Part shown: one piece after another, positions 19,976 to 42,700 of the stretch | How the letters are laid out: every line of letters begins with the position of its first letter | Numbering within the stretch: the stretch's first letter is position 1 | NCBI GenBank assembly: GCA_950097015.1 | Contig: CATNEN010000029.1 | Coordinates: forward strand, 7,874,001-7,938,000 | Direction of reading: 5' to 3' | DNA from: Macrostomum hystrix | Lineage: Eukaryota; Animalia; Platyhelminthes | DNA: 64,000 nucleotides | Notes under the pieces: model-generated | What the model was told of the DNA's origin: nothing | The model's database searches: none | The model's input: the letters and a program-made list of their open reading frames with translations, nothing else | Made by a program: the position numbers and the translations under genes

Positions 19976-20574
19976 CGCGAAAATTGAGCATGCAACATTT
20001 TATCACGAAATGCACAAAAAGAAAACATTTAATTTTGACTATCAAAAGCTGATTTGTAACTCCAGATCAAGGTAAATTTGTTCCCGAATTCATTAATTAA
20101 CTTGATTGACAAGCAATCAGATCCTATTCTACCAGTGTAGATTTCCCACGAGGATTTGGAAGGAGATTGGCACTAGATGTTGTTTACTGCGTGGCACTCA
20201 AATCAGTGTGAGACTCTGTGAATTCGGGTTTTATTAAGCTTTCAGAGAGATGCCATGCCATAAGCACGTTAAGAAACCTGCGAGCGTCATTTTTCAGATT
20301 GTCATTGACATTTTTAAGTGCTCCTTATTCTTGGATTACCTTACCAGCTGTCCGTCAGCTGAAAACCCGATGAAATTTCAGTGACCTCCTTCGCCTGCTA
20401 CTTTTACCGGACTTTCGTCATGAAAATCTGGACAATTATTTTTCAATTGTTCTTGAGATATTCGGGCCATGTTGTAGCCAGTTCACAGAGACAAACAAGT
20501 AGGCCGGATCTGTAGTCAGTTCTCTCAATCTGTCAGACTATCAGTTTTTCATCTGTCAATCTGTCAGCAGCCAG

Positions 20575-21475
20575 TCTTGTCAGTCACTGTCAGCAGTCAG
20601 TCAGCCACTGTCAGCAGTCATTTAGTTAGCCACTGTCAGCAGTCAGTCAGTCAGCCACTGTAAGCAGTCAGTCAGTCAGTCACTGTCAGCAGTCAGTCAG
20701 TCAGCCACTGTCAGCAGTCAATCAGTCAGCCACTGTCAGCAGTCAGTCAGCCACTGTCAGCAGTCAGTCAGTCAGCCACTGTCAGCAGTCAGTCAGTCAG
20801 CCACTGCAAGCAGTCAGTCAGTCAGTCACTGTCAGCAGTCAGTCAGTCAGTCACTGTAAGCAGTCAGTCAGTCAGTCACTGGAAGCAGTCAGTCAGTCAC
20901 TGTCAGCAGTCAGTCAGTCAGTCACTGTCAGCAGTCAGTCAGTCAGTCACTGTCAGCAGTCAGTCAGTCAGTCACTGTCAGCAGTCAGTCAGTCAGTCAC
21001 TGTCAGCAGTCAGTCAGTCAGTCACTGTCAGCAGTCAGTCAGTCAGCCACAGTCAGCAGTCAGTCAGTCAGCCACTGTCAGCAGTCAGTCAGTCAGCCAC
21101 TGTCAGCAGTCAGTCAGTCAGCCACTGTCAGCAGTCAGTCAGTCAGCCACTGTCAGCAGTCAGTCAGTCAGCCACTGTCAGCAGTCAGTCAGCCACTGTC
21201 AGCAGTCAGTCAGCCACTGCAAGCAGTCAGTCAGTCAGTCACTGTCAGCAGTCAGTCAGTCAGTCACTGTAAGCAGTCAGTCAGTCACTGTCAGCAGTCA
21301 GTCAGTCAGTCACTGTCAGCAGTCAGTCAGTCAGCCGCAGTCAGCAGTCAGTCAGTCAGCCACTGTCAGCAGTCAGTCAGTCAGCCACTGTCAGCAGTCA
21401 GTCAGTCAGCCACTGTCAGCAGTCAGTCAGTCAGCCACTGTAAGCAGTCAGTCAGTCAGCCACGGTCATTGTCAG
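20575..21475. repeat. (CAGT)n-derived compound micro/minisatellite (gtcagcagtcagtcagtcag[c/t]cact)
   Basis: About 900 bp of 21-25-bp units built from CAGT tetramers. Confidence 0.95.
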
Positions 21476-21736
21476 TCTGTCATCCACTGTCATCTGAGAT
21501 GTAAGAAGTCAGAAGATGCTCAGTCGCGGTCACTGCGCCTTCAAGGGTCATTCTTCCAAGTGAAGTGTGATGCCAACCGTCTCAGCCAATCAGATTGCAG
21601 AGCAGATGCTCATATAAGACCATGGCTGGAGATACCCCTCTGTTTGCTACCAAGCGAGGAACAGTTAATCAGTTCGCTCAAAATTACAAGTTTCTTCAAC
21701 TTGCAAATTGCGCGGCCAATCTAACAGTGAAAAAAA

Positions 21737-23850
21737 ATGAGGTAAAATTCTTTAGTGCGTCTGATTCCAATATTGTACGTATAATTTTGTGCCAATGCTT
21801 TTATCCAGTAATGTTAAGCTCCCTGTTTGAAACAGCGCCTGTACAGGAATAGTATACGCACTGGGTTTGTTTCTATGGGGCCAGTTGGAAATCGAATTTG
21901 TGTCGAAAAAAACGCAGTTATGCAGCGAGGCATTAAAAATATGCATTTAGACTGGAAAACACAGGACAGCCATCTCAGGCAACTGAAATTGACTCACATA
22001 AATGAGATTCACTTGGAATCGCACTGGACCCATATGAAACTGAGTAGGGTGAGAGATCGAAGGGTGATAGGCTACACTGCTGAGTTAATATTTCATGCCC
22101 ACTGTGGGACTGATAATCAGAGAATAACACTCGAGAGCACTTCCTGATGGATCTGGGGTTAGAAAAGTTATAGTATGCCGTCTGTGTGGCGCTTCAGGTT
22201 TTGAGTTTAGCTGCGGCTGAAGGACATATCTCTGATAGTCTCAGTAATTTTAAAACAATGTCTTTAATTTGGATTCTAGAAATTTCATGCATCTCAGCGG
22301 ACCCTCTTCGTTCCAGCAATCCGAAGCTGCCCGTGGTGACCCACGTGCTACTCATTGCCGGTTTCTGTGCGCTGCTGTGGGCCCCGCTAACCGTCTGGGG
22401 CAACTCGCTAGCCGAGGACGAAGAGCTGACGGGTGAGTCACAGTGCGTCCCAATCAACCAATGTACCCTCGTTACAATGTGCCCACTATCTAGGTGGGAT
22501 TAGCGAGTAAGCCGACATTCGAGGATTGGGCTAATCAGGAACTTTACTCTGAAATGGACTCAGTCGTCGACTTTGTACTCCTGTAGTGACGCATCAGAGC
22601 ATTATCCTCACAGCTCACTAGTCGTGCTCAGTTGATCTCGTTCTGTTTTACGCATTTCAAAGGACGGACTAATTTTGAGATTGTAATCTACAAAAGAAAT
22701 CAAAAAAATCTTTGTGTCTTGTCAATTGAGACATTGTCTGGCGGCATTGCAGTTGAGGCACTAATGAGACAGCTTCAGCTGGCGACGTACCGGAAGCTGG
22801 TCCGAGTCGCGACCAAATTGACTTATTGCACCCTGTCTGCTCTTTCACCCATCTTAGGCATTCTGTCTAGTGGATTGAAGTGAAATACGGACTCAGACAA
22901 GCTTATAGCTCTCATTTGCAATGCAGATGGGAGTTTTACGTGCAATAGGGTCTAACCCTCACTGTCTAGCATAATCAGCTTTGTTGAAGCTCATCAGCGA
23001 ATATAGCGATCAATAATTCATTCATGTTATATCATTAAAAAACACGCATTACCGTTTCACTCGAAAGTCCGTTGAATGCTTGCACACAAGGAATTATCAG
23101 CTACTGGCGGTGTGACCAATTCTGCCCATTTCGCTGACTCCTGAGCACACACTCACACAGGTGTGTACATCTGCCCTGACTTTCTCATCATCAGGCAGTG
23201 TACACTCACTGTGCCTTGAAGGTTGGCGCTCAAGGGCGAAAATTTTCCGACAAGTCCCCAAGCCTTCTCTCCACGGCTGCACCTCAAATAAATGTGGTGC
23301 CACTCACCCCCCAATAGACACCTGAGGCTGTGTACAGCTGTTTAGTCCATGTACTGGTGGAGGCTGCCACAAGCATCAAAATTTCTACCCTACGAACTGA
23401 AGGACTAGCGAATAAAGTGTCTTGCTGAATTACACAAATTGTCTCCCTTGGACTGAGATTCGAACTCCCGATCTCTTTTTTAGAATTCCGAAGCCCCAAT
23501 AAATACTGGGCTTATTTACATTCTCATTGCTAGAATTTCGGTTGGTTGTGGCAGCCTCATTATCTTCAATACCTCGTTGCACCTGTAAATTTGGGTTCCG
23601 GAAAGGAAAGTGTTGCGGTGTGTTGAAGATTGAAGATGAAACTCAAGCAAACGCTCATCGCATTGCAGAGAAGCGAGGCGCCAAAGACGTGATCGCCTAC
23701 TTCCCCTGCTCATACGGCGGCATCCCGTACCCGGTGACCTGCGGCAGCGGCACGGGGCCCAGGATCTTCAAGTCGAAGAACAAATTTCTGGTCTGCGTGT
23801 GCCTCTGCCCGCCAGACAAGACCGGCCCGAATTGTGGGGGCAGCTCCTGA
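21737..23850 (+). CDS. Putative secreted cysteine-rich prepropeptide (100 aa: signal 1-30, acidic pro 31-43 ending KR, mature 57 aa with 6 Cys)
   Basis: Model: 21737-21741 (ATG AG|gtaaaa), 22317-22432 (ccctcttcgttccag|...ACG G|gtgagt), 23669-23850 (cattgcag|AG AAG CGA GGC...TGA). Phases 2 and 1 match; 303 nt. Translation: MSNPKLPVVTHVLLIAGFCALLWAPLTVWG-NSLAEDEELTEKR-GAKDVIAYFPCSYGGIPYPVTCGSGTGPRIFKSKNKFLVCVCLCPPDKTGPNCGGSS. The last two exons have GC-rich third positions like the other genes here. The 5-nt first exon is the least certain part. Confidence 0.7.
23100..23300 (-). mobile_element. SINE family A, partial copy in intron 2 of the peptide gene
   Basis: aattctgcccatttcgctgactcctgagcacac...caagtccccaagccttctctccacggctgc matches family A. 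Confidence 0.8.
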
Positions 23851-24279
23851 TTGGCCAGACTGACCATGCCATGTACGGCTTCACTCTGACCCGACCAATA
23901 ACCGGCTGACTCCATCCCTATCGCCCTATAGGGAACAGATTACTCCCTTCAAAGGAGCTACTAAAAAACCACCAGTGTTTCTTAAAAAATGAAGCATGAC
24001 AAATACAAGGCGATGAAAATGAAGTTCAAATACATTTCAGGCTGCTACATGCACTAAAAGTACTGGGTGACAGCTTTGTTTTTTCTTGAGTCTCAACATA
24101 TATTGCGTATACTATAACAACTTCTACTTCACGGATGTAGAAAAGAAGATAAGGACAGAAATGCCCTTAGCCCAGGACCGCCAGTGTCACAACGAGATTG
24201 TAGCCCATTAGTTGGGCCTTCTGGACTTTCTAACCGAGAGTTCAGGAGTTCGAATGTCAGTCTAACGGAAAAAATTATA

Positions 24280-24570
24280 TCTTTGAGCAGGGATGGGTAT
24301 GGGTAGCTGCCTCTCGCATCAAGGTCCCTAAGTTCGATTCCGCGGCGAGGCCACATTTATTTATGGGGCGCAGCCGCGGAGAGAAGGCTTGGGGGATTGT
24401 CGTGCAATTTACGCCCTTGAGGGCCGACCTCCAATGCACAGTGAAGTGTGCACTGCTTGACGTTGAAAAGTCAGAGCGGATGTACACACCCCTGTGTGAG
24501 TGTGTGCCTGCGTACGGTATCTGTGTGCGTGTGTGCTCAGGAGTCAGGAGAAATGGGCAGAATTGCCTCT
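24280..24570 (+). mobile_element. SINE family A copy whose 3' end runs directly into the 16-bp satellite
   Basis: B box aagttcgattccgcggcgaggcc, with the body continuing to gggcagaattgcc; the normal 3' terminus is replaced by the array. Confidence 0.85.
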
Positions 24571-24579
24571 CTCGACAGG

Positions 24580-26715
24580 CTCTCGAAGCTACAGTCTCTC
24601 AAAGCTACAGTCTCTCAAAGCTACAGTCTCTCAAAGCTACAGTCCTCTCAAAGCTACAGTCTCTCAAAGCTACAGTCTCTCAAAGCTACAGTCCTCTCAA
24701 AGCTACAGTCTCTCAAAGCTACAGTCCCTCAAAGCTACAGTCTCTCAAAGCTACAGTCCCTCAAAGCTACAGTCTCCTCAAAGCTACAGTCTCTCAAAGC
24801 TACAGTCTCTCAAAGCTACAGTCCTCTCAAAGCTACAGTCTCTCAAAGCTACAGTCTCTCAAAGCTACAGTCCCTCAAAGCTACAGTCCCTCAAAGCTAC
24901 AGTCTCTCAAAGCTATGCTGTCTCTCAAAGCTACAGTCTCTCAAAGCTACAGTCTCTCAAAGCTACAGTCCCTCAAAGCTACAGTCTCTCAAAGCTACAG
25001 TCTCTCAAAGCTACAGTCCCTCAAAGCTACAGTCCCTCAAAGCTACAGTCCCTCAAAGCTACAGTCTCTCAAAGCTACAGTCTCTCAAAGCTACAGTCTC
25101 TCAAAGCTGCTGTCTCTCAAAGCTGCAGTCAGTCTCTCAAAGCTACAGTCTCCTCAAAGCTACAGTCTCTCAAAGCTACAGTCCCTCAAAGCTACAGTCC
25201 TCAAAGCTACAGTCCTCTCAAAGCTACAGTCTCTCAAAGCTACAGTCTCTCAAAGCTACAGTCTCTCAAAGCTACAGTCTCTCAAGCTACAGTCCTCTCA
25301 AAGCTACAGTCTCTCAAAGCTACAGTCTCTCAAAGCTACAGTCTCTCAAAGCTACAGTCCCTCAAAGCTACAGTCCCTCAAAGCTACAGTCCCTCAAAGC
25401 TACAGTCTCTCAAAGCTACAGTCTCTCAAAGCTACAGTCTCTCAAAGCTAGCAGTCTCTCAAAGCTACAGTCTCTCAAAGCTACAGTCCTCTCAAAGCTA
25501 CAGTCTCTCAAGCTACAGTCTCTCAAAGCTACAGTCCCTCAAAGCTACAGTCCCTCAAAGCTACAGTCTCTCAAAGCTACAGTCTCTCAAAGCTACAGTC
25601 CTCTCAAAGCTACAGTCTCTCAAAGCTACAGTCTCTCAAAGCTACAGTCTCTCAAAGCTACAGTCTCTCAAAGCTACAGTCTCTCAAAGCTACAGTCTCT
25701 CAAAGCTACAGTCTCTCAAAGCTACAGTCTCTCAAAGCTACAGTCCCTCAAAGCTACAGTCTCTCAAAGCTACAGTCTCTCAAAGCTACAGTCTCTCAAA
25801 GCTACAGTCTCTCAAAGCTACAGTCTCTCAAAGCTACAGTCTCTCAAAGCTACAGTCTCTCAAAGCTACAGTCTCTCAAAGCTACAGTCTCTCAAAGCTA
25901 CAGTCTCTCAAAGCTACAGTCTCTCAAAGCTACAGTCTCTCAAAGCTACAGTCTCTCAAAGCTACAGTCTCTCAAAGCTACAGTCCCTCAAAGCTACAGT
26001 CCCTCAAAGCTACAGTCTCTCAAAGCTACAGTCTCTCAAAGCTACAGTCTCTCAAAGCTACAGTCTCTCAAAGCTACAGTCTCTCAAAGCTACAGTCTCT
26101 CAAAGCTACAGTCTCTCAAAGCTACCGTCTCTCAAAGCTACAGTCTCTCAAAGCTACAGTCTCTCAAAGCTACAGTCTCTCAAAGCTACAGTCTCTCAAA
26201 GCTACAGTCTCTCAAAGCTACAGTCTCTCAAAGCTACAGTCCCTCAAAGCTACAGTCTCTCAAAGCTACAGTCTCTCAAAGCTACAGTCTCTCAAAGCTA
26301 CAGTCTCTCAAAGCTACAGTCTCTCAAAGCTACAGTCTCTCAAAGCTACAGTCCCTCAAAGCTACAGTCTCTCAAAGCTACAGTCTCTCAAAGCTACAGT
26401 CTCTCAAAGCTACAGTCTCTCAAAGCTACAGTCTCTCAAAGCTACAGTCTCTCAAAGCTACAGTCCCTCAAAGCTACAGTCTCTCAAAGCTACAGTCCCT
26501 CAAAGCTACAGTCCCTCAAAGCTACAGACTCTCAAAGCTACAGTCTCTCAAAGCTACAGTCTCTCAAAGCTACAGTCTCTCGAAGCTACAGTCTCTCAAA
26601 GCTACAGTCTCTCAAAGCTACAGTCACTCAAAGCTACAGTCTCTCGAAGCTACAGTCTCTCAAAGCTACAGTCTCTCAAAGCTACAGTCACTCAAAGCTA
26701 CTGTCTCTCAAAGCA
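24580..26715. repeat. 16-bp minisatellite CTCAAAGCTACAGTCT, about 130 copies
   Basis: Continuous array that is stop-free in all three plus frames (artefactual SQSYSLSKLQSLKATV ORFs). Confidence 0.98.
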
Positions 26716-27776
26716 GCTGTTTCTGAAGGGCGACAAATTTAAAAGGCAGTTATTTATACAAAATTTTTTAGATTAATTGCTTGCTAGAGTTATTCGCAAT
26801 TACAGTGTTGTTTATTTAATAGAAGCTTTTATTTCACTCGAATGTCCAATAGATAAAGTTGCGCTGTTTACAGTAAAAAATCAGACAAGTTTCTACGAGC
26901 AGTTAAAAGTTTGGAATCGGAAGAGCAATGCACGAAACATTAATGAAAACTTTTAAAGCTTTCTTTCCTCTGAAAGCCGAGTTCGTTTCATGAGTTCGAT
27001 TTTGTCCCATTTTTTTGGAAACAGAATAGTCGGTTGTGTGTTTAAGTCGAACTCGCCAAACTGAACCATAAAAAAATTCCTGAGTCGCAAGCAAACAATT
27101 TAATACCCCGAAATCTAACTCTCATTTATAAGAAATCAGCGCCGTTTACAACAGACGCATTAAGTAAGTGCGTAAAAGCTTGTCTACACTACTGCGAGTA
27201 GAAATATAAGTCAATATCAATTAAAAGCGATACAAAAATAGGTTGTAACATACAGGAGCCAGTTAATTGACAAAAAAATCCAGTTCAGTGTAATATCCGC
27301 CATCAGCACATGCAGCCAAAAGTACACAAAGAACCGATTAGCAGAGGTTCAAAGAAAACTTTCTAGAATAATTCATCACATTTAAATACTCGGACAGATA
27401 GTTAGGCTTGTTGCAACAAGCGGACTTGCCGGTCGGCAGACCAGCTGGTAGCTGAGGCGAGGTGTATCATTGAGTTTCTAACTGTTTATATCTGTAGAAA
27501 AAAACAAAGGTGTATAAGAACTTGTTTTTTGCAAAAAAGCGCTACTCAAACCAGGTAACTGGTTTGCCCTTGAAAAAGTTAAAGTCAATAAGAAAATTTC
27601 CAAACTTTTTACTTATAATTTAAAAAACAAACTATCTCAGGAACAATATCCAGTCCTTGAAAGTGGGAAAAAATTTACGTCATAAAAATATGCTTGTATG
27701 TAACTTAAAAAATCAAATCACTATAAACTAGAGGTTCGACTAGAGACGAGCAAATAGTTGGATGAGCGTTCAAGCC

Positions 27777-30700
27777 TCACACCTGCAGCAGGAGGGCGAC
27801 TCCGGCCAGAATCCAGCGCGATGGCTGGTCCTTGGTCTTCAGGTTGAAGGTCCACACAAAGGTGGGGCCGCGGGCCTTGGTCTTGTACACCGGGCAGGCA
27901 TAAGTGCCACGAAGCTCCAGTCGGTCGGTGGGCACCGCTCGGACGAATACAACCGGCAGCTCTGGCGCGATCTGCATCAGGGCCGCCTCGCGCACGCCGT
28001 GTCCAGCGTCCCACTGGGCGCCCTCCATAAACATGCCGTGCACGTAGGCGCCTTCGCGCGGAGCTCCGCCAACGTCGTCTCGGGTGCGCTTCGTGACGTC
28101 AACCTGTATGGCCATCTTGTCCAGCGGCCATTCGTTCTTGCGCGCCATCTGCTGCATGACGGCGGTGAGGAAGGACTGCGGATTAAACAGGCCGCCAAGC
28201 CAGACGCTCGGCGGCAGCTGGAAGTCGGAGGCCCAGATGTCGAGCTCGCGAACCCTCTGCTGGAGGTCTCCGAACCAGACGCCAAGCGGTTGCAGCGATG
28301 GATAGGCCTTTGCTGCCCAGGTGTCCGGCACCTGGTCCAGGAACAGCGCGCCGCCAAGGGCCTCCATCTGAGCTGTGATGGTCAGCTCACCCTTGAGTCC
28401 GAGCTCCAACGAGCGCAGGCTCGTGCGCATCTCGGACAGCAGAATGTTCATGCGTTCGCACTCCTGTAGAGCGACCACTGTGAATGGGGTCCGCTCCTCC
28501 GGCGCGATTTTGCCCAGCAGCTCAGGCATGAGGAAGGGCTCGGGCATTCGCTCAACTAGGTCTTCAAGGACGCTGCGAATCTTTTCATCGCGCGAGCTGG
28601 CCCCGGCACCGGCGGTGCCGGCGTCTCGCGGCTGCATCTCGAAGACGGTGCGAAACAGGTTGGCGGCAGTCTTGGTCAGGAACTCGACCTCGGCGTTCGG
28701 GTGTAGGCCATAAAGGTAAGGTGTCTCGGCGGGTAGTTTGTCATCAATGTAGGCCAGGTAGCCCTGGTAGTCTGACACTGGAGCTACCTGGAAGCCAGGT
28801 GCGAGCTCCATTTCACCTTCCACCTGTGAGCAGAGGAAACCAGTGGGAAAAAATTGTGTAATTTCACGATTTAGTCAAGATATTTTATCACACAAAACGG
28901 GAGTTTAGTTACAATTAGCGAGCTTAATAATCACTCTGAACAATGAGACGTCTTGAGCTTACCAAAGCCGGCTGCATGTAAGTCTCTAGATAGCTTCTAC
29001 ACAGCCGTCTGTCCCAATCGTCGGTGATGTGCCCACCGTACATAATTTCTCCGAATAAGTAGCGCAGATCTTCCCAGGGCACAGAAGCATTGGCTTCCAG
29101 GTAATTGTATAGAACGTCCACCGAGATGGTGAGATCGCCGTTGTTGAACGGGTAACTGCGGTTCCAGCCGATGGAGCCAAACTTTCGCCGCTCAGAGATG
29201 ACAGCGTGGAAGTAGCACAGCGAGAAAAGGATCGCATTGAATTCGACCTGCTTGCTGCACCGGTCCAGAGTGTCCTAGGAATGTTTCGTTAAAAAATCGT
29301 ATGAGAAATGTGCAAATACATGGAGCTCGAGGCAAATCTTATTGCATGGCATTCAGACTACCTTTAATCAAAATATCAGCTTACCTGATCGAACAATGCG
29401 AATGCCTTGTGAAGGTTTGCGTGCATTCCAGTTGGCGGCTCATTGGTGATCTTAATTGACGTCTCAAGGATGCCTTGAGGAATAATGTGGGATTCAGGCG
29501 TCGGCGACGGCTCCGCTGAGATGAAGACTCGGAACTCGACGTTCACTTCCGGATCCGGAAGCATACGCCTCAAGAATTTTGTCTAGAGTTGGCAGCCAGT
29601 TTTTCACTAGATGCACATTCTGCAGCACCACCCAGTGGCCCTGCCTGCTAGCCAGTTCCAGTGCGCGCTCAGCAACGACCTCTTGGCCCTGACCCAGCGA
29701 GATGTTGTGAAAGCGACCGTTGCCCTCTGTAAACTGTTTCTTGCGACCAAGGTTTTCAACCTCCTTCAGTGGGTCCACTCCTGGTGACAAGATGAAGAAG
29801 ATTGGCGTGGACGATGTCGACTCTTCAAACGACTTGGGGAAGTCGATAGGTCGGCCTTCAACATAGCGCGAGCCCATGCGGGTGGAGATGAAGTCCATCA
29901 TGGCGTAGGTCATGCGATCTGGTCGCAGGGCGCGCATGATGCACAGTTTCTGCAGAGCACTCTTGTTCTTCCACTCTTGCGGCAGCTTCTCGCGCTCGGG
30001 ACACTCGCTGGTGACAAAGGCCTTCCAGCGCTTTGCCGAGCCAATGATGTCGTTATCAAGGTTTTTGAATTCACCAGACTCTTGCATAGCCAGCGCCTTC
30101 ACACCGCCCCAGCCAGTACCGGTGATGAAGTCGACGGGCGACGAGAGACCAGTCATGATGGGGAAGCGCAGCAGGAAGTCTAGTTCCTGAGGGTCTATCT
30201 CGCTACCAAGCAGCATCACCTGAAGCGTCATCTGCGTCGTGAAGATTAGCTTGTCTCGCTCGAAAAAGACCTCGAGTTGTGTAAATCGTGACCAGGAATG
30301 TAATGCTCTCAAGCAGAATGCGGACGCGCTCCTCTTCGTCTTCAGTTTCTTCAGCTCGATCAATTGCATTATTAAATACAGTCTCAAACGCCTTCAATGA
30401 GAACTGGTACATCGGGTTGATCATCCAGAGGTCGTTCATGACAAAGAAAAGCATCGAAGCGCGAGCAGCGCATGGACGAAACTTCTCTCTTGCATTATTA
30501 ATATCAACCTCGGTTGCCTTCGAGATTTGTACTTTAGATTCGATCTCCAGGGCGGTGCGCTTATTGTTTTCAAGGTTCTCCACCAGTTCTACATCCCCAA
30601 GGAAGTTTTGCTGTGCAGCCGATAGTTTCGCTAGCAGCGCATCCTCAAGTCGCTTAAGTTCAATTTTAAACTCATTCTGATTGCGTGTCAGGTCCGATTT

Positions 30701-33700
30701 GAGCTCTTCGAGTTCCGGTTTCTCCTTGCGAACCACTGAGGCGAGCAACTGGTCTTCCAAGCCAATCCGGGTTACCGTAAAGTTGATGAGGGTGGTCTGC
30801 GCCTGGATCTCTGGCTTGAAGTGTGGGTTAGCCAGCTTAGTATGCAAAATTAGCCGGAAATTTTGATGATAGTCTATTTCTTTGTCACCGATTCGGATGG
30901 CACGACCGCGTTTGATAGTGTTGCGCCCGAGAAGTGGGTCCAGGACAGGGTCTATTTGTTCGCCAAGGTTTTCAATGAGAACTACCTCACCAGCACTTAT
31001 AGCTGACTCCACCGCGTCTAAATATTTTTTCTGGCCGATTCGTACGGCCCTTAGCTGAGAACCGTAGCGACGTTTTATCCACTGAACGCCTTGCAGCTGC
31101 GGGTCAACCATCAGCGGCCATCGCTCGCAAGTAGTCAAGACTGCGGCATTTTCGATCGACATCTGATCGCTTGGCAAGCCTTCATTGTTCCAGGTTGCCA
31201 CTTGGGCATCGTCTACAAGCAGCTTGATCGGGTCGAGACCTTCCGAGATTCGGATGGAGGTCCTTAGACTAGAAAGAAATGGAAGCCAGCGTTTTGACAG
31301 CAACTCAATGCGATAGTTCTTTGTGAAGTAGCCAACATAAGACACGTAAGCTGCGGTCACCAGGACGTCACCAGCAAGTGTCTCCTTGGTGCCGGTTAGG
31401 CGCTTAACTTCGCGGCCCCATCGCTCGTTTTCGCTGGCTAAACCATGGACAAGACGGTCAGCCAGTTCGATGGTTCTGGCAGTGGTCTCTGCCTCCTCTT
31501 GAACCTTACGCTTTTCCTCTTTGGCTCGGTCCAGTTCCTGATTCAGCGCATTCAAACTGGCTTGCAACTTGCCAACTTTTTGCTTAATGTTGTTTAAATT
31601 GTTGGTCAGCAGCTGCAGTTCCTTGCTGGCAGCTTCTAGAGCGTCTCTCTTTGGTTTGACTTCGCAGTAAACTTGATAGTACTTTATTATATTGATAACC
31701 CAAGCACACAGACCAGCAGCTGCAATGGACTTAGATTTCACTTGTTCTGGTTCGAAGCCCGGTTTATTAGTGTATTCCTTGACTGCTTTCAGACAGTTTT
31801 CGTGTATATTGTCCTTGTCATATGTGATGAGGCTCTCGAGGAACTGGTCAACTCTACCCATCATTACCTTGGCCGCCTTCCAACTACGATCGCGCGGTAT
31901 CTTTCCACTTTTAGCCATCAGGACCAGTACGGCGGCCGCTATACTAACGACAATCGGCGGCGGCGAAGTGAAAGACTTTAACTCCGTTAGGTTGTCGCGG
32001 TTCAGCGTGTTCAGCGCTGCTTCTGCCGCCTCAAGTGCGGGCAGGGCGCGCGACAGATCCTTTTGACAATCGTCCGTTTTAATTTTCACCTCAGCCTGTT
32101 TCTTTGATACCTTGTCCTCTTCTGCATCCGCCACAGCCTTTTCGTCTGCAACTCGCGCTGCGTCCTGATTCACCCTGGCTAGGATTTCATTGGCAGTCTG
32201 CTCCCTGGCAGCAACTTCAACCTCTTGCTCGGCAAGCTTTGTCTTGAGGTCGTCAACTTGCTCAGCAGTGGACTCTAGCTTTTTCAATCCGCTATCTAGA
32301 CGTGAGATAGCAGTTTCCAACTCGGAATCCTTTTTGTTAAGCAGGTTGCGATACAGCTGAATCTGTTCAAGGAATGACTTTGGAGTCGTGTAGTTGTATC
32401 GCTTCTCATTCAATCGGTACTGCTCGCTAGTCTCATTCACGGACTGGTGTGCGTAGGCCATAAACTCGGCCGTAGACTGTACCGTCTCTGGCGATAGCTG
32501 AGGCACTTCCGCCAGGAATCGCCTGGAAACAGAAACTAGCGCCTGCTGAGGCCATTCATGAAACCAGTCAATCGCTGTGTTATTGATCAGGGCAGGGAAC
32601 TTCCGACCTCGAATTCGCAGAGCGCTGCCAACAGGTGAAAAGCACAAAACAACCTTCAGTTTAAGCCGCACCTGGTCTATAAAAAAGCGCCAACAGTTTT
32701 CCTTGGTGTCCTGTAAGTTCATGCCTCGGACCTCGCCCTTGACGGCATTGCAAATCGACTCCAATTCGTCGTCGGCAAATAGGTCTGGAACTTCGCCAGA
32801 AGCAAGCATGTCGTTAACCAGAACCAGGAACTTCTCCTCGGCTATCTGTCCATCAGTGAGCAAGAACATTGTACGGATGCCCTTCTGGCCTGCCCGGACG
32901 TACAGCTGTGCGAGGTCGGCCCTCAGGTCAGCTATGCCGTAGCCCTTGCGCAGAGAGATCTGGAACACCTCCAGCGAAGTAAGGAAAGCTGCCAGGCGGG
33001 ATAGCGACTGCTTGCCAGAGCCACCGACGCCCACCAGGAGGGCGTTGCCTCTAGGCGACTCCAGAATTCGGCTGATGCGAAGGATGTGCGAGATGGCGTC
33101 CTCGAACAGCACTAGATTCATTGCTGCATTGATCTCATTGTACGAGTCCAGTGCTTCCGTCAGCACGTGCTCAATACTTGCGAGCGACTCCACGGCCTGA
33201 TATTTATCATCGCCCATGTGCTTAGCGAAGTGGCAAAATAGAAGAGGTCGACGGAATGCGGCCTCTTCTGACCCGGTGATGTAGTCGCTCAGCATCTTCT
33301 TCGCGACATCCTTGCTGATGCTCTGAAAATGTTTTGTCGATATAGCAACTACTGCTGGCAAAAAGTGTCATTGAACAAATCAAATATTACATTATACCTA
33401 CAAGTGGTGAACCATATGAATTACTTGCGTATTGCTAAAGAGAAAAGTTCTCCATTAATGCTTCTCATCGGTCCCTTTAATTGCTATCTGAATACTAAAT
33501 CCAACTCGATTTAGAACGAAAACAAATTTGCTTTCAGTGGTTTCTTGGCGCCTACCTGGTACTTAGCAATGTCTTCTGAGTCCACAAGCTTGTCACAATA
33601 GACCCTCTCGCACTCGTGCAACCACAATCGGATGAGGTCCATGCGGCCATGCAGGCAGTCCGGTTCGGCAAATAGCATGCCCTGGAACACAGCTGACAGG

Positions 33701-36700
33701 TCGCGCAGGTTGAATAGATAGTGAAACTTTACCGCGGTAGGCAGGAAATTCTGCAGCATTCGCTGATGCAGGCCAAGCGTAGCGTGAACGACGTCCTTGA
33801 CGGTCTGGAGACGTCTCACATCAGCCGGGAAGGTATCGCCAAGGTGCTGCGACAGAATGCTGGTGTAAATGGTCTCCAGTGCTTCGTGGCCTGGCAGCGA
33901 CATCGCCAAGACGGCGAAGTGACGTTGGAGGCGAGGATTTATGCTGAAGCTGCCAGCAGTAGGGTTCATGCAGGCCACATACTGCGTGTTGTGCACCTCC
34001 TTGAGCGAGATCTTCTGCCTGTCATACCAGTGCCCATAGTCCATGTGCTGCCTAATGAGGGCGTGAGGCTGCACAGTGAAGTACTTGTCCACTTCCGGCA
34101 TGTTCATGTCGTCGACAAAGTAGATCAGGCGACGGGTGCCCGGAGGCCCGAAATTCTTTCCCGATTTTTTCTCCAGCGGCTTCTCCAGCACTCGCTGCAG
34201 CATTTCCGAAGTGGTGTAGAAGTTGAAGGGCACGTTCGCAACCATGAAGTTGTCAGATGTCTCTACAAGTTCGCGCAGCTTCTCTTGCATTAGCACGGAC
34301 TTTCCAGTTCCAGCATTTCCGACTAGCATAACCGGGTAGCGCTTGGCGAGCAGCAGATCCAGCAGATACTTGATCCGCACCGTCTCTGCTGTGTGCACCA
34401 GAGTTGACTGCAGTGGTACGTCCGGGTCCAGCTCGAATTTAGGCACCCGCTTCGACCAAGGCTCAAAGCGCTTAGTTTCAAAGTCTAGGTAGACATCGAA
34501 TACGCCGTAGTCTTTTGCTACCTTTGGCATCTTGAATTCGTGAAGAAACCACTTGCTGAATTCGACTCGGTGATCGACCAGCTGCAATTTATTTTCAACA
34601 TTGTATTTTAAAACTAGCTGAAGTAAACGAATGTTGTACTGCCCACATTAAAAGTTCGGGCATGAAGCTGCCACTGATTTTGCCAGTAACTCAATCTAAT
34701 GTATGCAAAGTTCTTTGCATAATTCTGTACTTGTAATTTTAGCCCATGTATTCAAACTGATTAGCCCTGAATTGGAACCGAATAGCACACTTTACAACTA
34801 ACTTTAAATTTCAATTGCAAACTTATGTTAATCTGTGAAACCAATATTTGTATTTTGCGCATCACCTGATCCTGGAAAGTGCAGCCGCCAAAGGCCCAGA
34901 TACAAGCAAAGCAGAACAGCGGCTCCATCGCGTCCTTGGTTGCGTCGGCAGTGACACCATTCTCCGGCGTCATGATGCTCTCCAGCAGGCAGCAAAGCAT
35001 CTGCACGTGCGAAATCTCTGGTATTGGCGTCACCTTCTTGAACTTTGATTTAAGCACATCCAGGCAAGGCGGCACGTACTTGTCGAAAAGTACAGTCAGG
35101 TTGGCCTGCTCGGTCTGGCCGCCACGAGCGTTAATCCAAGAGGTCACAAATGGAAGCCAGCCGAGGTCCTGTTGAATCAAGGCACTGTTTCTTTTAAGAG
35201 GCTCTTTCCAAGAGATTGTAGCCTAGTGGTTAGGGCGTCGGACTCACGACTTGAAGGTCGGGGGTTCGATTCCCTGACTCCACTGAACAATTTGTGTCCT
35301 TTAGCAAGACACTTAACTCTGCATTGCTTCAGTTCACCCAGCTGTTAAATGGGTACCAGCATCAGCTGGGATAATTGAAGGTGGGTGTGTCGTCCAGTCC
35401 ATGGACTGAACAGCTGTACGCAGCCTTCAGATGCGCCGCGCATTAGCTGCGGCTGTGCTGTCGGCTGCACATCTGACCCAATTGGGGCAGGTGTAATAAG
35501 TTATTATTATGATTATCAATTCTTTTAGCTTTGAGTTTACTAAACAGTAGTAAGACCTCGATATTTTTCCGAAGGGGGAAAGACCACGGGGTATTTCAAA
35601 TACCAACTGCCTTAATTCACGATCGCTCCTAAACCGAATGACCGATTTTCAGAAAGTCCGTTTACAATGATAGAAATTTTCCGCCCTTTACGATGAACGC
35701 CTTACAAAGTTAATTGGTGACAGGCCAACTAATATTGCTCTGTATAAACCTCTATGCAAAATCCATGTTGGTTTAATAAAAAAATTACCAACATAATTCA
35801 TTAAATATAATCAACAATAGCCGAGATGGTTACATGATGAAATTTTTTGAGCCGAGAAATAATGCCTATATTGGTGGTTTTTGTCACTAGACACCCCGAT
35901 GAGAATCGTTGAGCATCTCGACGGTGCCGATGTTTTGTGATTCTGGAAGTTTTTTTCATCGGATAGAAGGGAAAGATTTTAGCCCCGTGTTCTAGATTTT
36001 CATTGCGAATATTTTAGGAGAAACAGAAAAAAAGAAAAAATCTGGGTATTTGAAATATCCCCTTCCAGTAACTTAGTTTTCAATCTGCTATTATTCAGGA
36101 CAGCACTCACCCCAGGGTTAATGTAAAGAATGCCGGCGCGAGATACTGTGGCCGGAGTAGCAGTTCTCAAATGGCTGATCTCGAACAGCAGTCGCATTGA
36201 CGGGGTGAGCGGAATGCGCTCGTTTGATGCCAGTGTCAGCACCTTATTGTCGTCCATGACTGTATTGAGCGATTCGATCCACATCGGATCGATGTCACCG
36301 TCCAGTACAATCCATTTGGGCCCGTCGTGGGTCACGTTGGCCAAATCGCGCATCACAACGGAGAAGATGCCGTCACGCCACTCCCTGGTGGCCGGGTTTA
36401 TAACGCCGAACAGTTCATCATTAGTCACAGCCTTGGGATTTAGATCCAAGGCCATTGGCTTTCGTTTCTGGTTCTGATAAGTCCTATTTAGCGTCTTCCA
36501 CACCTCGCTCTTGCCAGTGCCGGCAAAGCCGTTAATGAAGACCGAGTGGCGTACAGCGAACAGTTCCTGCAGCTGGACCACCTTTAGTATGAAGTTGTCC
36601 TCCGGCTGCAGGCCCAGGTCCAGAGCGGCCTGGCGCACCTGCTTCTCAAAGTCCAGGTCCCGCTTGCGCGGCACATCCAGCGCAGGGAACAGGTCGCGGA

Positions 36701-39700
36701 TGAGGCCCATGAACACTGGCATATCGTCAGTGACAATCTTCGGAATGTTGAAGTCGCGCAGGGCTCGCATGAGCACCTGATTCTCTGGCCTGGTTGGATC
36801 ACTTCGCTTGAGGGAGCCGGCCACGACAAGTACGGACTTAATGGCGCGCAGGCCCCAGTCGTAGTGGTCCTGCTTTGACAGCAGCTCTTTGCACAGTTCG
36901 TACAGCGTGATAAACTTCTTTGCCAGCAGGCGAGCTTCAAGGAAGCCTTCGGCTACAAGCATGATCTCGCAGATTAGGTCAAAGTCTGGCACAACCATGG
37001 CGCACGGCCGGAAAGAGGGCCTTCAGATTCTCAGGAAGCTCCGTACGGCCAGCATAGCTGCGGAGATTTTATGCATTTAGCAGTAACTAACAGCTTTACT
37101 TTAAAATACCATCAAATTGGTATACTTAATAACGACTGAACTTACCCAGGGTTCATGGTTATGAAAATTCCCACTGAAGTGCTCAAGCTGATCTCTTCGC
37201 CCAGAAATTTGAACTTGCCTCCCTCATCGATAGGACGATGCTCTTGCTGTTGCTGGCTGGCTGGCGGCAACAGCTTTCAGAGCGTCCTGGATGCACTTCA
37301 CCTGGACAGCCACCACGGATAGGACCTCCACGGCGATGCGGTTAAACTCATCGAAACAGCCCCAGGCACCGGACTGAGCAAGTCCTTTGTAGATATTGCC
37401 GATGGAGCGGTAGTCCATCTGCTCCGAGCAGTTGAACACGTACACCATCATGCCGAGTGCTCGGCCAAGATCTTTGGTTGTCTCCGTCTTGCCTGTGCCT
37501 ATAGTTGCAGAGTGTTCATCATATTGTGAGCACAATCATTGAAGCACGCACACAATGCAAGGCAACACTGACAAAGTACCACCAAATCACTTACCGGCTG
37601 GGCCAGCTGGTGCCCCACTCATGTATAGGTGCAGGGACTGCGTCAGCGTGATGTAGCATCTATCAGTTAATGGCGTTATCACCAAACGAGGCGTGTTGCC
37701 AAGGTACTCGTGGTAGTAGCGGAATTCGGCGTCGCAGATGTTAGCAAAACAGTCGCCCTGCTTGCTCATCCCATCTATTAAAGTTATAAAAAAAATTTAA
37801 GTCATTCGTTTTCAAAGACGCTCGCAGTGGTCGTCGTCAGAAATAGGTCAGAAACAATATTTTAAATATCTCACCTGTGTCTTAACTGTGATAGCCAAGT
37901 AAAGGCTTGAGAGTTTTCGACCTTCTGTGTGATCAGTTTTCCCACAATATCTCGATTGTGCACATCGATGGTGCAGATGGTCATGATCTTCTGTCGGTCC
38001 TGCGCACTCAAATCTCCAATGAGCAGGCTAATCAGAGCATTCAAATTGGCAATTTGCTTCTTATTGAACTCTTTCAGCGCATTCTCAAAGCCCTCCTCGA
38101 GCCGCGAGAAGGCCAGGTTGGTCTCCACAGTCCAGCCAATCTGCGAGCCGCTCAGAGCCACCTGAGCCGGGTAGTCGAAGATCCACTGGTCACGTGGCTT
38201 CTCTTCAAAGTTAGCCACGGCGTCGCTGAGGGTACGGCGCATGGTTTCTCGCATCTCCTTGAGCAGGATACTCAGCCAAACTTCTACTTGGCCATCCAGA
38301 GTTGGACGGCTGCTCAGCTTTACGAATTCGCCGTCCTTGCTCCACATCGCGTTAGCAGTCTTGGTTGCTTGGCCGTCACTGTTCTCAACGAATCGAAGCT
38401 TTGCCATGCTGTCAAACAGCTTTGTCAGGTGCTTCATTACCAGAACGGGCTCGTTTCCATGCGACAGGATGTCCAACAGATCGTTGTGTGAAACAAAGTA
38501 AAACCTAGGGAAGGCCAGCCGTTTAGTCTCCATGTAGTCCATGAGAGCTTTCTCGCACACGGACAGGTCCTGCTGAACCTTTTCCAACCGATGGTACTAG
38601 TCCAGCCTGGTTAGTTGACGCGACCACATTAGTGTGCCTAATAACCTCAGCTGCAATGCCCTTAAAGTCTTGGTCGATAGCCTCGAAACGCTGCGTGGAC
38701 TCCGGCAATTGGACTCGAATATCTTCCGAGCCAATGAAGATGGATTCCAGGTTAATCCAGGTTCGCTGCACCTCCAGATAGATGGCAAGAACCTGATCTG
38801 CAGTGGCTAGACGATGCACCCAGTCGCGAATCTGATCCAGAAAGTAAGATACGTGCTTGCTAGTCAGCATATTCTGCAGCTGGGCCTGGTTATCTTCCAG
38901 AGTCTCGATCACCTCATCGCTGGCTTTCACAATTGTGATGCCAGTGCGCTGATGCCGCTCGTGCTCTAATTCCATCACTAGCCAATTGGCTTCGATCTCC
39001 TTTAGAGTCTTCTCCATGGCCATCTCTTTGACTGCTTTGTCAACGATATTTCGCACTTCTTCCTCGTAGTGATGCAGCTCGAGCTGCAGCAGCTGGTGTA
39101 GCGTAGTACTCTCCGACATTGCGAAGCGGACTCCAGTAGCAAGCATGAGGGCAGCCCAGTGCCGATCCCGGATGGCCGGATTCCTCAGCTCGGTGACGGC
39201 TCGCAGGGAGGTGAGCATGTTCTTTACATCCATCTCGCCTCCAGCGTAGGCGTCCCATGAACGAACACCAGCGTCCAGTTGACGCAAAAGTTTTGCAAAG
39301 TTTTTGCACTCCAGGTCCATCATGTCGACATCGACCTGCATCCATGGCGTGTCCTGCCAGGCCTCGATGCTGGATCGGATTGTAAAAAGCAAATCCCACA
39401 GGCTCTTTAGCAGAAGCAGCTCTTTACGACACAGGCGGACTAATTTGAAGTCTGGAATGTTCACTTCGAAAAGTCGCCCGGATTCGACCAGCTCGGCTGC
39501 CTTTGCTTCGGCCTCTGACAAGCGACTGTTCCATCCGTCCATTTCGGTATACGGATCTGAGCAGCTCCTTTGAAAGGCTGAGCAGCATCTGAAAGCTTCC
39601 TGCAGGGCGCGTTGGCTCTGATCAAACTCAGAGGCTTCAGCACTGATGCGAGACACCTGCTGGTTCTGCAGCGGCAACAGACCTGTTCGCATCTGCGCCG

Positions 39701-42700
39701 CTGTCTTCTTGCAGTTACTCCAGCTCTCCGGCAAAGCTTCAAGCTGTTCGTGAACCTCTGGCGGCATCTCCTGGCCGTACTCTTTCAAAAGTTCGATGGT
39801 TTGCTGCAGCGGTTCAAACATCGCGTCCGTCTGAGCCTGGCGCTCCTTCTGAGCAGCCAGACGTGCCATAACAGCCACGAGATGATGATAGTCGCCAGGC
39901 TGGGGCTCATTGGTTAACACTTCTTTGGTCTCCTGAATGAAGCTGTCTAGCTCGCTTAGACTGTTAATCACGTGATTGATAAGGTGCTCTTTGAACAGGA
40001 GACTCCACTTCCGCACTGTGTTAAGCAGCGCCTGCTTGAAGGGCCTGGCGTCCACCCGGAGCCAGCCATTAAACACGACGTGCGGCTGCGTCTCGGCTAT
40101 CTCATTGTAGACTTCCTCAAAGTGGTCGATCTGCTCTCGGAACTGGGGAAGCGTCGGTGGCGACTCATCGACATCCTTGTTCGAGCTCCTCGTGGGTCAG
40201 CGTGTGACCGTAGAGCAGAAACTGGCGCAGGAATTCCTGGCGGTCGTCGGTCCACAGGCTGGCGTGCTTGCGGAACGATTCACGGTACTCCAATGCCTTG
40301 GACGTTGCTGGGGCGACGTGTTGTTCGACCAATGTTGAGCGGAGGTCATTTAACAGCTGATGACCTTCCAGGTCGGCCTGGTAGTTCTGATAGTCCGGGC
40401 TCTGTTCAACGAAATGACCAGCCACGCGCGGTATAAAACGGCCCTGTCGGAAGATGTCGCCCAGGAGTGTGTCGATGAGATCGTAGAAGGAGTCGGCGCT
40501 ACTACGACTGAGCGACTTCCGGAACTCAATTTGGGCGTGCTCAGTGTCCAGCTCCATCTTGATCTCGAACAGCGGCTGTTGATCCGAGCGCACTTCCGTG
40601 TGCTTGAGCAGGTAACTGAGGCTTGCAGTCACAACCTCGGTAAGCCCGTCCAGTACCATCTGGTCCAGAGTCTCCAGGTAGATTCGCCAGGTATTTGAAT
40701 CTGTTTGAAACTCGAACAGCTGCTGATTTTCCTGGATGAAGTTTTCCAAATTTCTTGTGAATTTATTGCACAAATTATTCTTGTGATGCTGATGCTGGCG
40801 AGCAAAGAAGTTTTGCTTTAGGAAAAACAAAGACTAAAACTAGGTCTATACTCACCTGAACCAGCCTGTGCACCTCTCGACCGACCTCCTCCACCTGTTT
40901 GTAGCGGAGCAGAATAACCTCCTCTCTGTCGTCGCATTTCAGGAGTGTCTCGTACTTCTCAGGCGTCCTCTCGTACACAGGTCGAGTAGCTAGGCCTCGC
41001 ACAACAGCTTGCAGCCGGTCCGTATTGGCGTGAGCCTGTACGACAATCTTGTGGGCGGCATGTACCGAGTCACGCAGCTTTTCAATGTAGGCCAGAGCGT
41101 CCGGACTCTCCCAAGTGACAGTGCTCAGGCCCTGCTCCGCCAGATTCTCGATGGACTGCATCCGGTCGCCCATTAGCTCACGCTCGTAGTGCAGCACAGA
41201 GTCGAGCAGGTAGTTGTACCAGCGCACCGTGTTGTACAGGTTGGCGTAGTAGATTCGCAGGGTCTCACGCTGAGCGAAGAGAGCCTCAGCGCCAGTTGGG
41301 ATTTCCACAGCGCCGGCCGCCGAGCTCAGGGTCAGGTTTGAGTCACTTTCAGTTGCCGGGGATGAGCTATTGCCATTCAACAGGCGAATGTACTTTACTT
41401 CGCTGAGTGCTGCCACCAGCTACGGGTGGGCAGGTGAGGTCACCAAGGTAAGTCAGCAGAATATTATATCGAGTAAGCTCTTATTGAACAAAAGTTCAAA
41501 GATTTTCCAAATTACCTTAGGATCAAAATTAACTTCAAGGTAGTTGGAATCGGCCAGCCGTAGCAGTAGGCGCTGGCCCAGGTTCACCTGGCATTCGCTG
41601 TCGATTCGCGCCTTCCATTCATCCACTACGGACTCGTCGAATCTGGTGGGTTATAAATTTTTCTGTGTCAGAAAACCTCTATAAAGTGCCCGAAAACAGT
41701 TTACACTATCATACGACTATAATATAAAACAATTTACGTGTCCAGAAAGGCCATAAGTTCATCCTTCTTCTTGAGCACTAGGATGCCCTGCTCAGTCTCC
41801 AGGCATCTGCGGATTGTTCGCGAGTTAAAAAGGAGAAATGAAAAGTAATTAATTTTTTACGGCTCGTAATTAAGAAAAATCTTATTAAGGTTTCAAACGT
41901 CAAATAAAAATAAGAAAAGAAACGTTTAGACGTGTTCTGTGCTTCCATGTGCAAACAGTAATTTGTGAATTCGACAACATTGAACCCATTCGCTTGTTCT
42001 AATTTGAAATTTTATTTGAATACTTGAAAACTAAATCTGGACCTTGTGCTGTGCCGAATTGAAACTTTGTGAGTTAAATAAACTGCAGTGATGCAAGGAG
42101 AAGCCAAGGTATGAAAGCAACATTTTTTTAAAACACATTGCCATTTAGGTGAAAGGTGACCTAAGTGCCGCTTAATGACCTGTCGGTCAGATTCCGAAGC
42201 TCTAAACACAGACTACAAGCTCCTTATATCACGCAGGGACAGACCCACAAAGGGCCTTCAGTAACGAATAGCTTTTGCGGATATCTAAGCATACTATAAA
42301 TATCGGGTACAGGTTGGTATCTAAATACGGAGTCTGGACTGGCCAGGTGTAAAGCAATTCCTTCAGAAATTGAACGGCCTGTACGAGCAATGCTCCATGC
42401 AAGGTTGCTATGGTGTGAACTTATAGTAAAACTCGAGCCAAAATGCACACAAGGTCGAACGCTTTAGGTCAGTCGGGTTTGACACTGATAAGAAAACTGA
42501 GACGTTTTTATGCGGCGAAAATTGCCAGTGCAAAAAAGTAAAAATGCATACGAAAGAGCAGAAACATTGGTGACTCTCTATCTCTGTTTGCTTTACCCCA
42601 ACGTCTCGAGCGAGTTGACGAACGGGCAGAGAAGCTGAAAAAGCGTTCGAGAGCAAAAATTGCGTGGAAGAGAGAGAAGTAAAAAAACTTAAGCAGATAG

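Follow-up and report, generated by a model that had tools for sequence, protein, structure and literature searches.

A conserved three-exon gene for a putative EGF-derived secreted peptide in the flatworm Macrostomum hystrix

Introduction

Ligands of the epidermal growth factor (EGF) receptor (EGFR) carry an Arg directly before the sixth Cys of the EGF module (Cys6) and a Leu about five residues after it, and they are usually made as membrane-anchored precursors. Secreted single-EGF proteins include Lymnaea L-EGF and the sea-anemone EGF-like toxin gigantoxin I. The planarian Smed-egf-6 and egf-7 are secreted single-EGF ligands without a transmembrane anchor, and in Macrostomum lignano the EGFR family is expanded to eight members (PMC4914847). 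Here we analyse a small gene of Macrostomum hystrix that appears to encode a secreted, six-Cys peptide related to EGF. It lies in a window of 64,000 nt (the whole stretch of DNA that was analysed; contig CATNEN010000029.1, positions 7,874,001 to 7,938,000, assembly GCA_950097015.1), and all positions below are those of the window unless another sequence is named. A preliminary description of the locus, made from the sequence alone, had proposed a hidden three-exon gene for an unfamiliar, lineage-restricted peptide of toxin, venom or seminal-fluid character.

A spliced three-exon gene

The gene lies on the + strand and consists of three exons with coding parts at 21737-21741, 22317-22432 and 23669-23850, which join into a 303-nt coding sequence (CDS) for a precursor of 100 residues. 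Its features are the following.

21586..21590, + strand: CCAAT box-like element, read from the sequence; putative promoter element
21613..21619, + strand: TATA box-like element TCATATAAGA; the first transcribed base seen follows about 45-50 nt downstream; putative promoter element
21663..21741, + strand: exon 1, with a 5′ untranslated region (UTR) of at least 21663-21736, the start codon ATG at 21737-21739 and 2 nt of codon 2
21742..22316, + strand: intron 1, 575 nt, GT..AG; skipped by contigs of two runs (X2, X4), with depth 0 inside
22317..22432, + strand: exon 2, coding for the remaining signal peptide, which is predicted to end at Gly30 (22399-22401), and for the bulk of the acidic pro-region; phase-1 end; contigs in all four runs
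22433..23668, + strand: intron 2, 1236 nt, GT..AG; skipped by contigs of all four runs; holds a repeat at about 23117-23485 and the unused acceptor 23534
23669..23676, + strand: start of exon 3, where the Glu codon is completed and followed by the Lys-Arg dibasic site (23671-23676)
23677..23847, + strand: predicted mature six-Cys peptide of 57 residues with an EGF-like C-terminal CxC-x5-G-x2-C sub-domain
23848..24053, + strand: stop codon (TGA, 23848-23850) and 3′ UTR; contigs end at about 24050-24056

Contigs from four public sequencing runs, which belong to one study and two organisms, were aligned to positions 21000-24300. Each run contains 8-13% of the sampled sequence words, a share that roughly corresponds to the length of the exons. 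The junction 22432/23669 is present in all four runs and the junction 21741/22317 additionally in X2 and X4, both exactly where the preliminary description had placed them. A single 385-nt contig spans exons 1, 2 and 3. Record 22 of X4 starts at 21663, right after an Illumina adaptor, and continues into exon 2; record 8 of X2 has the same joint between exons 1 and 2. At the 3′ side, record 1 of X1 extends to 24050 and record 14 of X2 to 24056. Intron depth is zero save for a dispersed repeat at 23117-23230, which draws many unrelated contigs. The runs are taken as RNA, because the exact removal of two GT-AG introns without intron coverage is impossible from genomic DNA. Aligner offsets at the joints ('TG', 'C') stem from the A-run before the ATG, which counts seven A's in the transcripts and eight in the reference, and from a synonymous G>C difference at 22431. 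Where the RNA contigs depart from the reference within the CDS, at 22431, 23724 and 23727, the change is synonymous each time. The gene is real, spliced and conserved.

Both introns have regular borders, with donor GAG/GTAAAA after 21741 and acceptor TTCCAG/C before 22317 for intron 1, and donor ACGG/GTGAGT after 22432 (phase 1) and acceptor TTGCAG/A before 23669 for intron 2. A TGA in the same frame (21728-21730), 9 nt ahead of the ATG, closes the reading frame; the transcribed leader holds no other ATG. An ATG at 22259, located in intron 1 and in frame with exon 2, was rejected as the start; the contigs splice from 21741 instead. Acceptor 23534 was rejected as well, being used by no contig, and no contig lies over 23553-23663. 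The GC content at third codon positions (GC3) is 0.83 in the CDS versus 0.36 in the in-frame stretch 23536-23668 behind this rival acceptor. Neither of the outcomes that the preliminary description had named as evidence against its gene structure, splicing through 23534 or linkage into a larger protein, is seen, and the transcript begins, terminates translation and ends at its 3′ side independently.

Behind acceptor 23534, at 23567-23602 of intron 2, an in-frame CTCKFGFRKGKC fits the EGF_2-type pattern C-x-C-x2-G-F-x4-C; it has low GC3 and occurs in no transcript contig. The likeness of this motif to EGF is probably due to chance, and the motif may alternatively be a decayed former EGF exon.

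The CCAAT and TCATATAA elements upstream of exon 1 may form the promoter of the gene. At the M. lignano loci L004 and L005, CAGCCAAT lies shortly 5′ of a TCATATAA element, the same pair of motifs as in the M. hystrix gene. At the other end, an AATACA hexamer at 24029-24034, 16-22 nt before the contig ends at 24050-24056, is a candidate poly(A) signal.

A family of two paralogues in Macrostomum

A word-indexed protein search finds two M. lignano relatives, the orthologue BOX15_Mlig026996g1 ('hypothetical protein', 90% identical) and the paralogue A0A1I8HGG9 ('Secreted protein', 74% identical). The orthologous gene matches the M. hystrix gene in its three exons, their phases and their codon positions (ATGGG/GT, phase-1 G/GTGAGG, CAG/AGAAGCGC), and a convergent dynein heavy-chain gene lies about 3.8 kb downstream of it (L005). 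Orthology is therefore secure, given the shared exon structure and the same dynein heavy-chain neighbour. The deposited M. lignano members are BOX15_Mlig026996g1/g2 (PAA47331, PAA56703, PAA49465) and A0A1I8HUJ2 on the orthologue side and A0A1I8HQH8 and A0A1I8G223 beside A0A1I8HGG9 on the paralogue side.

The M. hystrix genome holds exactly one further copy (contig C38:6607890-6608048, 72% identical), to which a profile search of the genome adds none. Since both paralogue lineages occur in both species, they predate the split between M. hystrix and M. lignano. The paralogue cluster that the preliminary description had suggested looking for is not present: the two M. hystrix copies lie on different contigs without tandem arrangement. 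At the paralogue locus (L002, on C38), the exon sits between long tandem-repeat arrays at 128-1240 and 1923-2852. The M. hystrix paralogue also has a run of nine Ser (AGC repeats) at its predicted mature N-terminus, which is absent in the M. lignano paralogue. Searches with tblastn reveal no upstream exons of the paralogue at L002 and L003, where the region is divergent and full of satellite.

We built a profile from four sequences and compared it exhaustively (hmmsearch) with 1.84 billion representative proteins, a set that contains few flatworm transcriptomes. All matches are Macrostomum proteins, apart from one bacterial protein judged spurious. As far as this protein set shows, the family thus appears to be Macrostomum-restricted, in agreement with the lineage restriction first proposed. 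The gene had entered the databases before: M. lignano copies carry the labels 'hypothetical protein', 'Secreted protein' and 'EGF-like domain-containing protein'.

Two of the matched sequences were set aside. The bacterial FG-GAP/ASPIC protein P0004 owes its E-value of 8e-5 to a sum over four near-identical repeats. Its unannotated, Cys-free, 49-residue C-terminal tandem repeat (about 770-948; GDIIYPVTTAIGAGNQIFKRIDR) resembles peptide residues 4-36 without gaps, with 13 of 33 positions identical, a likeness that we judge to be chance or convergent β-hairpin similarity. The 857-residue M. lignano model P0003, which carries the domain at its C-terminus, has neither a start Met nor a Pfam domain and diverges from the orthologue exactly at the boundary between exons 1 and 2; we regard it as a gene model that is chimeric or arose by read-through. 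No contig on record was found to encode A0A1I8HGG9 or P0003.

No publication or expression record on the M. lignano members, and no data on expression site, processing or activity, were found in the Macrostomum literature and its partly searchable supplements. The gene identifier Mlig026996 is likewise absent from the full texts and supplementary tables of Macrostomum papers, of which the tables are searchable only in part.

Predicted precursor and mature peptide

Signal peptides typically end with small residues at positions -3 and -1. The N-terminus of the precursor has a basic n-region (Lys5), a hydrophobic core (VLLIAGFCALL, mean Kyte-Doolittle (KD) value 2.95) and a c-region of the form P-x-x-V-W-G, with small residues at -3/-1 (V-W-G/N). 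The layout is alike in the orthologue (LVAG/E) and in the paralogue, which carries the UniProt label 'Secreted protein'. No hydrophobic segment lies C-terminal to the domain; the last Cys and four further residues are the end of the protein. The protein is probably secreted.

A dibasic pair opens exon 3 in all four members, as EKR/G in the M. hystrix gene and the M. lignano orthologue, IRR/S in the M. hystrix paralogue (at the same exon-3 start, L002:1429 onward) and HRR/S in A0A1I8HGG9, with diverged flanks. The order given in the preliminary description, from signal peptide through a short acidic pro-region and a dibasic site to the six-Cys peptide, recurs in the M. lignano orthologue, and the dibasic site recurs at the exon-3 start of the paralogue. 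In the M. hystrix gene, the predicted mature peptide of 57 residues and about 5.9 kDa has a net charge of +4 and an isoelectric point (pI) of 8.9, and the pro-piece a charge of -3. In the paralogue lineage the pro-region lacks this acidic character, the mature charge is only +2, and the dibasic site lies 14-23 residues upstream of the conserved core. The Cys spacing of the mature peptide is C-x10-C-x17-C-x-C-x-C-x8-C, and its six Cys would form three disulfides.

Relation to the EGF fold

The EGF_1 signature of PROSITE is C-x-C-x5-G-x2-C. All four family members contain C-L-C-x5-G-P-N-C, which matches it, and the automatic UniProt label of A0A1I8HUJ2 ('EGF-like domain-containing protein') is consistent with an EGF derivation. 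The canonical EGF spacing of six Cys (C-x4-7-C-x4-5-C-x8-13-C-x-C-x8-C), which goes with disulfides 1-3, 2-4 and 5-6, is not that of the peptide, and Pfam assigns no family to the long open reading frame 23527-23847. In a profile search of PDB sequences, the best matches are EGF modules, 5ky5_B (EGF(+), E 0.033) and 5l0t_B (E about 0.03). The alignment pairs vCLC-x5-GPNC with tCLCPPGFTGPNC and, weakly, PCsyGG with PCqnGG.

We also aligned the four-member family with 28 canonical EGF domains extracted from the same genome, using hhalign. The probability is 88% for columns 41-56, the C-terminal 16 residues only. The score of 28.3 compares with 11.7 +/- 3.9 when the non-Cys columns are shuffled with the Cys fixed, and one of 150 shuffles scores as high; the likeness therefore exceeds Cys spacing. 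Both the PDB match and hhalign agree with the earlier view that EGF likeness is limited to the C-terminal end and that the third Cys is misplaced.

A full-length alignment of low confidence places Cys11 of the peptide at EGF Cys2, Cys22 at EGF Cys3, and Cys42, Cys44 and Cys53 at EGF Cys4-6, and leaves Cys40 with no EGF counterpart. In the same low-confidence alignment, EGF Cys1 is unmatched and two loops contain insertions of 5 and 11 residues. The AlphaFold2 (AF2) model calculated from the four-sequence alignment has a predicted local distance difference test (pLDDT) score of 79 and strands at 5-10, 26-32 and 38-44; this arrangement would suit an EGF-type module in which the N-terminal strand packs against a major hairpin that has grown longer. 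A feature search of the ESM Atlas gave no usable match. At the level of sequence, EGF likeness thus appears supported for the C-terminal half, and the mapping of the N-terminal half is inferential. We infer that the peptide is an EGF-derived module with one rewired disulfide and predict the pairing Cys11-Cys42, Cys22-Cys40 and Cys44-Cys53.

Conservation of the mature peptide

Venom and toxin peptide families are marked by multigene expansion and expression in glands, and toxin families such as conotoxins combine a conserved signal and pro-region with a hypervariable mature peptide. The present family shows the reverse of this conservation pattern. Comparing the M. hystrix gene with its M. lignano orthologue (Nei-Gojobori), signal plus pro-region have 54% amino-acid identity and a ratio of nonsynonymous to synonymous substitution rates (dN/dS) of 0.33, and the mature peptide has 91% identity and a dN/dS of 0.12. 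Over the four members, and thus both paralogue lineages, 35 of the 57 mature positions are invariant, including the six Cys, YFPCSYGGIPYPV, GPR-x-F and FLVCVCLC; a basic hairpin GPR-x-F-[KR]-S-[KR] is likewise conserved across the four. The pattern of a venom or toxin family is not found here: the leader diverges, the mature part is conserved, and there are two unlinked copies.

The conserved mature peptide, the drifting leader and the lack of expansion point to conserved extracellular binding or signalling rather than to an arms race. Reproduction-related genes in Macrostomum are reported to show rapid evolution and turnover (PMC7336406; PMC10468722). A conserved mature part, two unlinked copies and a drifting leader do not fit this turnover. 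The toxin, venom or seminal-fluid character originally suggested for the peptide is not supported by this combination of 91% mature identity, a dN/dS of 0.12, a divergent leader and two unlinked paralogues.

Genomic surroundings

Upstream, the neighbour of the peptide gene is an SLC7-type amino-acid permease gene on the minus strand. Downstream, convergent with the peptide gene, an axonemal dynein heavy-chain gene occupies 27777-41416 on the minus strand (Pfam Dynein_C, AAA_9, MT stalk, AAA_8, DHC_N2). A dynein heavy-chain gene stands beside the M. lignano orthologue (L005) too, and synteny is therefore conserved.

Satellites lie on both sides of the gene. A 25-nt satellite with 38 copies (20561-21492) stops about 170 nt short of the first transcribed base, and a 16-nt satellite with 133 copies (24575-26714) starts about 520 nt past the 3′ end of the transcript; the latter array produces long artefactual open reading frames at 24363-26776. 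Inverted copies of a dispersed element flank exon 3, one at 23206-23485 in intron 2 and one at 24228-24444, with an arm complementarity of 79-80%; its part at 23117-23230 recurs in many unrelated expressed contigs. A tRNA-T-arm-like GAGATTCGAACTCCCGATC in one arm hints at a tRNA-derived short interspersed element (SINE).

Discussion

On balance, we favour the reading that this is a stand-alone gene for a convertase-processed, cationic, EGF-derived secreted peptide, most likely a diffusible ligand or modulator with a conserved partner. A TATA-driven gene of three exons would give an mRNA of about 580 nt and a prepropeptide of 100 residues. Signal peptidase would cut after Gly30 and a proprotein convertase after Lys42-Arg43, removing a 13-residue acidic pro-piece and releasing a cationic peptide of 57 residues with three disulfides. 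Relative to EGF, Cys1 would have been lost, and the longer loops (+5 and +11 residues) would produce a long basic β-hairpin, presumably closed by a disulfide between the new Cys, two residues before EGF Cys4, and the equivalent of EGF Cys3. The mature peptide would then act by extracellular binding to a conserved partner.

Several observations weigh against this reading. For the 57-residue peptide, hmmscan returns 0 Pfam-A families (E <= 10), and the locus is not among the 145 EGF matches of a whole-genome PF00008 scan. Only 16 of the 57 residues align confidently with EGF, and the global-mode probability of hhalign is 3.6%. In structure searches, neither Foldseek nor VIA-align nor the ESM Atlas yields an EGF or another meaningful match. 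The dN/dS estimates rest on 56 codons of one species pair. The residues that contact EGFR are missing: a canonical EGFR ligand is unlikely because Asn replaces Arg before the last Cys and because the tail comprises only four residues, which makes the Leu impossible. An acidic pro-piece followed by a cationic hairpin is also a layout typical of antimicrobial peptides.

That last point leads to the main rival of the ligand reading, which we regard as possible and considerably less probable: a host-defence or offensive effector, that is, a cationic β-hairpin antimicrobial or toxin-like peptide of gland or epidermal cells, kept inactive by its anionic pro-piece. The charges are complementary (+4 and pI 8.9 for the mature part versus -3 for the pro-piece), all four members keep the basic hairpin GPR-x-F-[KR]-S-[KR], the family is lineage-restricted, and many toxins and defensin-like peptides share the layout of signal peptide, acidic pro-region, Lys-Arg site and Cys-rich peptide. 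However, purifying selection on the mature region is strong and its conservation far exceeds that of the leader, the reverse of what toxin families show; the genome carries just two copies, unlinked and without tandem arrangement; and in the paralogue the pro-region is not acidic and the mature charge just +2. The peptide could instead be a specialised gland product, such as a prostate seminal-fluid protein or a component of adhesive organs, rhabdites or mucus. A small, secreted, Cys-rich protein behind a TATA-type promoter would suit such a role, and Macrostomum gland secretomes are described as rich in lineage-specific secreted proteins (PMC5977470, PMC6410801). We nevertheless consider a gland product unlikely, as the peptide is 91% conserved between M. 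lignano and M. hystrix while reproduction-related genes are reported to evolve fast (PMC7336406, PMC10468722), and both paralogues are kept in the reciprocally mating M. lignano and the hypodermically inseminating M. hystrix. Mlig026996 does not appear in the searchable supplementary tables either, a weak point since these tables are incomplete.

Two further alternatives concern the form of the protein. A secreted EGF-like protein might stay uncut at the Lys-Arg site and function as a pro-form of 70 residues, for instance matrix-associated or bound to a carrier. Cleavage at this site is inferred, and in the paralogue the dibasic site lies 14-23 residues before the core, so that the site does not determine where the core begins; yet the dibasic pair holds the same gene position in all four members despite diverged surroundings, and an uncut form seems quite improbable. 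That the domain belongs to a larger multi-EGF protein, or that acceptor 23534 adds 45 residues with a CxCxxGFxxxxC motif, is very improbable and largely refuted. The stretch from 23534 is in frame and carries its chance EGF-type motif, and the M. lignano model P0003 of 857 residues ends in the domain. Against this, all four runs join 22432 to 23669 and have no contig cover at 23553-23663, GC3 behind 23534 is 0.36 versus 0.83 in the CDS, the frame is closed by a stop 9 nt ahead of the ATG, and contigs end about 200 nt past the stop codon; P0003, without a start Met or Pfam domain, departs at the boundary of exons 1 and 2, as a read-through or chimeric model would.

If the reading as an EGF-derived ligand or modulator holds, a small EGF module has lost its first Cys, gained another and lengthened its hairpin under strong constraint. 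It would also provide a compact, easily synthesised orphan ligand for assays of regeneration, stem cells and immunity in Macrostomum, where transgenesis and RNA interference (RNAi) work. As a long shot, the peptide might found a Macrostomum- or Macrostomorpha-restricted class of diffusible EGF-derived ligands, marked by loss of Cys1 and a rewired disulfide, that signals via the expanded flatworm EGFR family or another receptor. If true, an EGF-type growth factor would here be built in a structurally new way, and it would act in signalling for neoblasts, regeneration or tissue homeostasis. As it stands, the peptide joins the many Cys-rich secreted peptides of animal genomes that are restricted to one lineage. 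The analysis yields a validated gene model and a defined family with two paralogues in each of two species, and it supplies evolutionary grounds against a toxin or seminal-fluid reading.

Comparison with known systems

With toxin and antimicrobial prepropeptides the peptide shares the precursor layout and the charge complementarity; it differs from them in the reversed conservation pattern of its family and in having no multigene cluster. For the Cys framework C-C-CxCxC-C, no toxin framework is known to match, and none was found in Pfam, structure and literature searches; nothing relevant was found in the literature on flatworm EGF-like toxins. The published 2FTX/Argos fold is unrelated to the peptide.

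Secreted single-EGF ligands resemble the predicted product in their short precursor with a signal peptide, their one EGF-type module and their soluble release without a transmembrane segment. In contrast to the peptide, they have the canonical six-Cys spacing and the receptor-contact residues. Protein searches detected no homology of the peptide to these ligands.

The closest relatives are the M. lignano family members. In the mature part, the orthologue is 89-91% identical and the paralogue 66-74%, and the orthologue shares exon structure and synteny. These entries are automatic annotations only ('hypothetical', 'Secreted protein', 'EGF-like domain-containing') without an assigned function.

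In comparison with the EGF-like domain, the C-terminal CLCPP-x3-GPNC of the peptide is close to canonical EGF, for which a solved module reads CLCPPGFTGPNC; a PC-x2-GG motif stands at the position of EGF Cys2; and the peptide is predicted to be a small, all-β module with three disulfides. By the low-confidence alignment, it differs in lacking the canonical Cys1 and in having an extra Cys two residues before Cys4. The loop between Cys2 and Cys3 is x10 instead of about x5, that between Cys3 and Cys4 about x19 instead of x8-12, and there is no aromatic residue after Gly/Pro. The deposited copies carry no function, and what is new here appears to be an atypical, EGF-derived family of secreted peptides.

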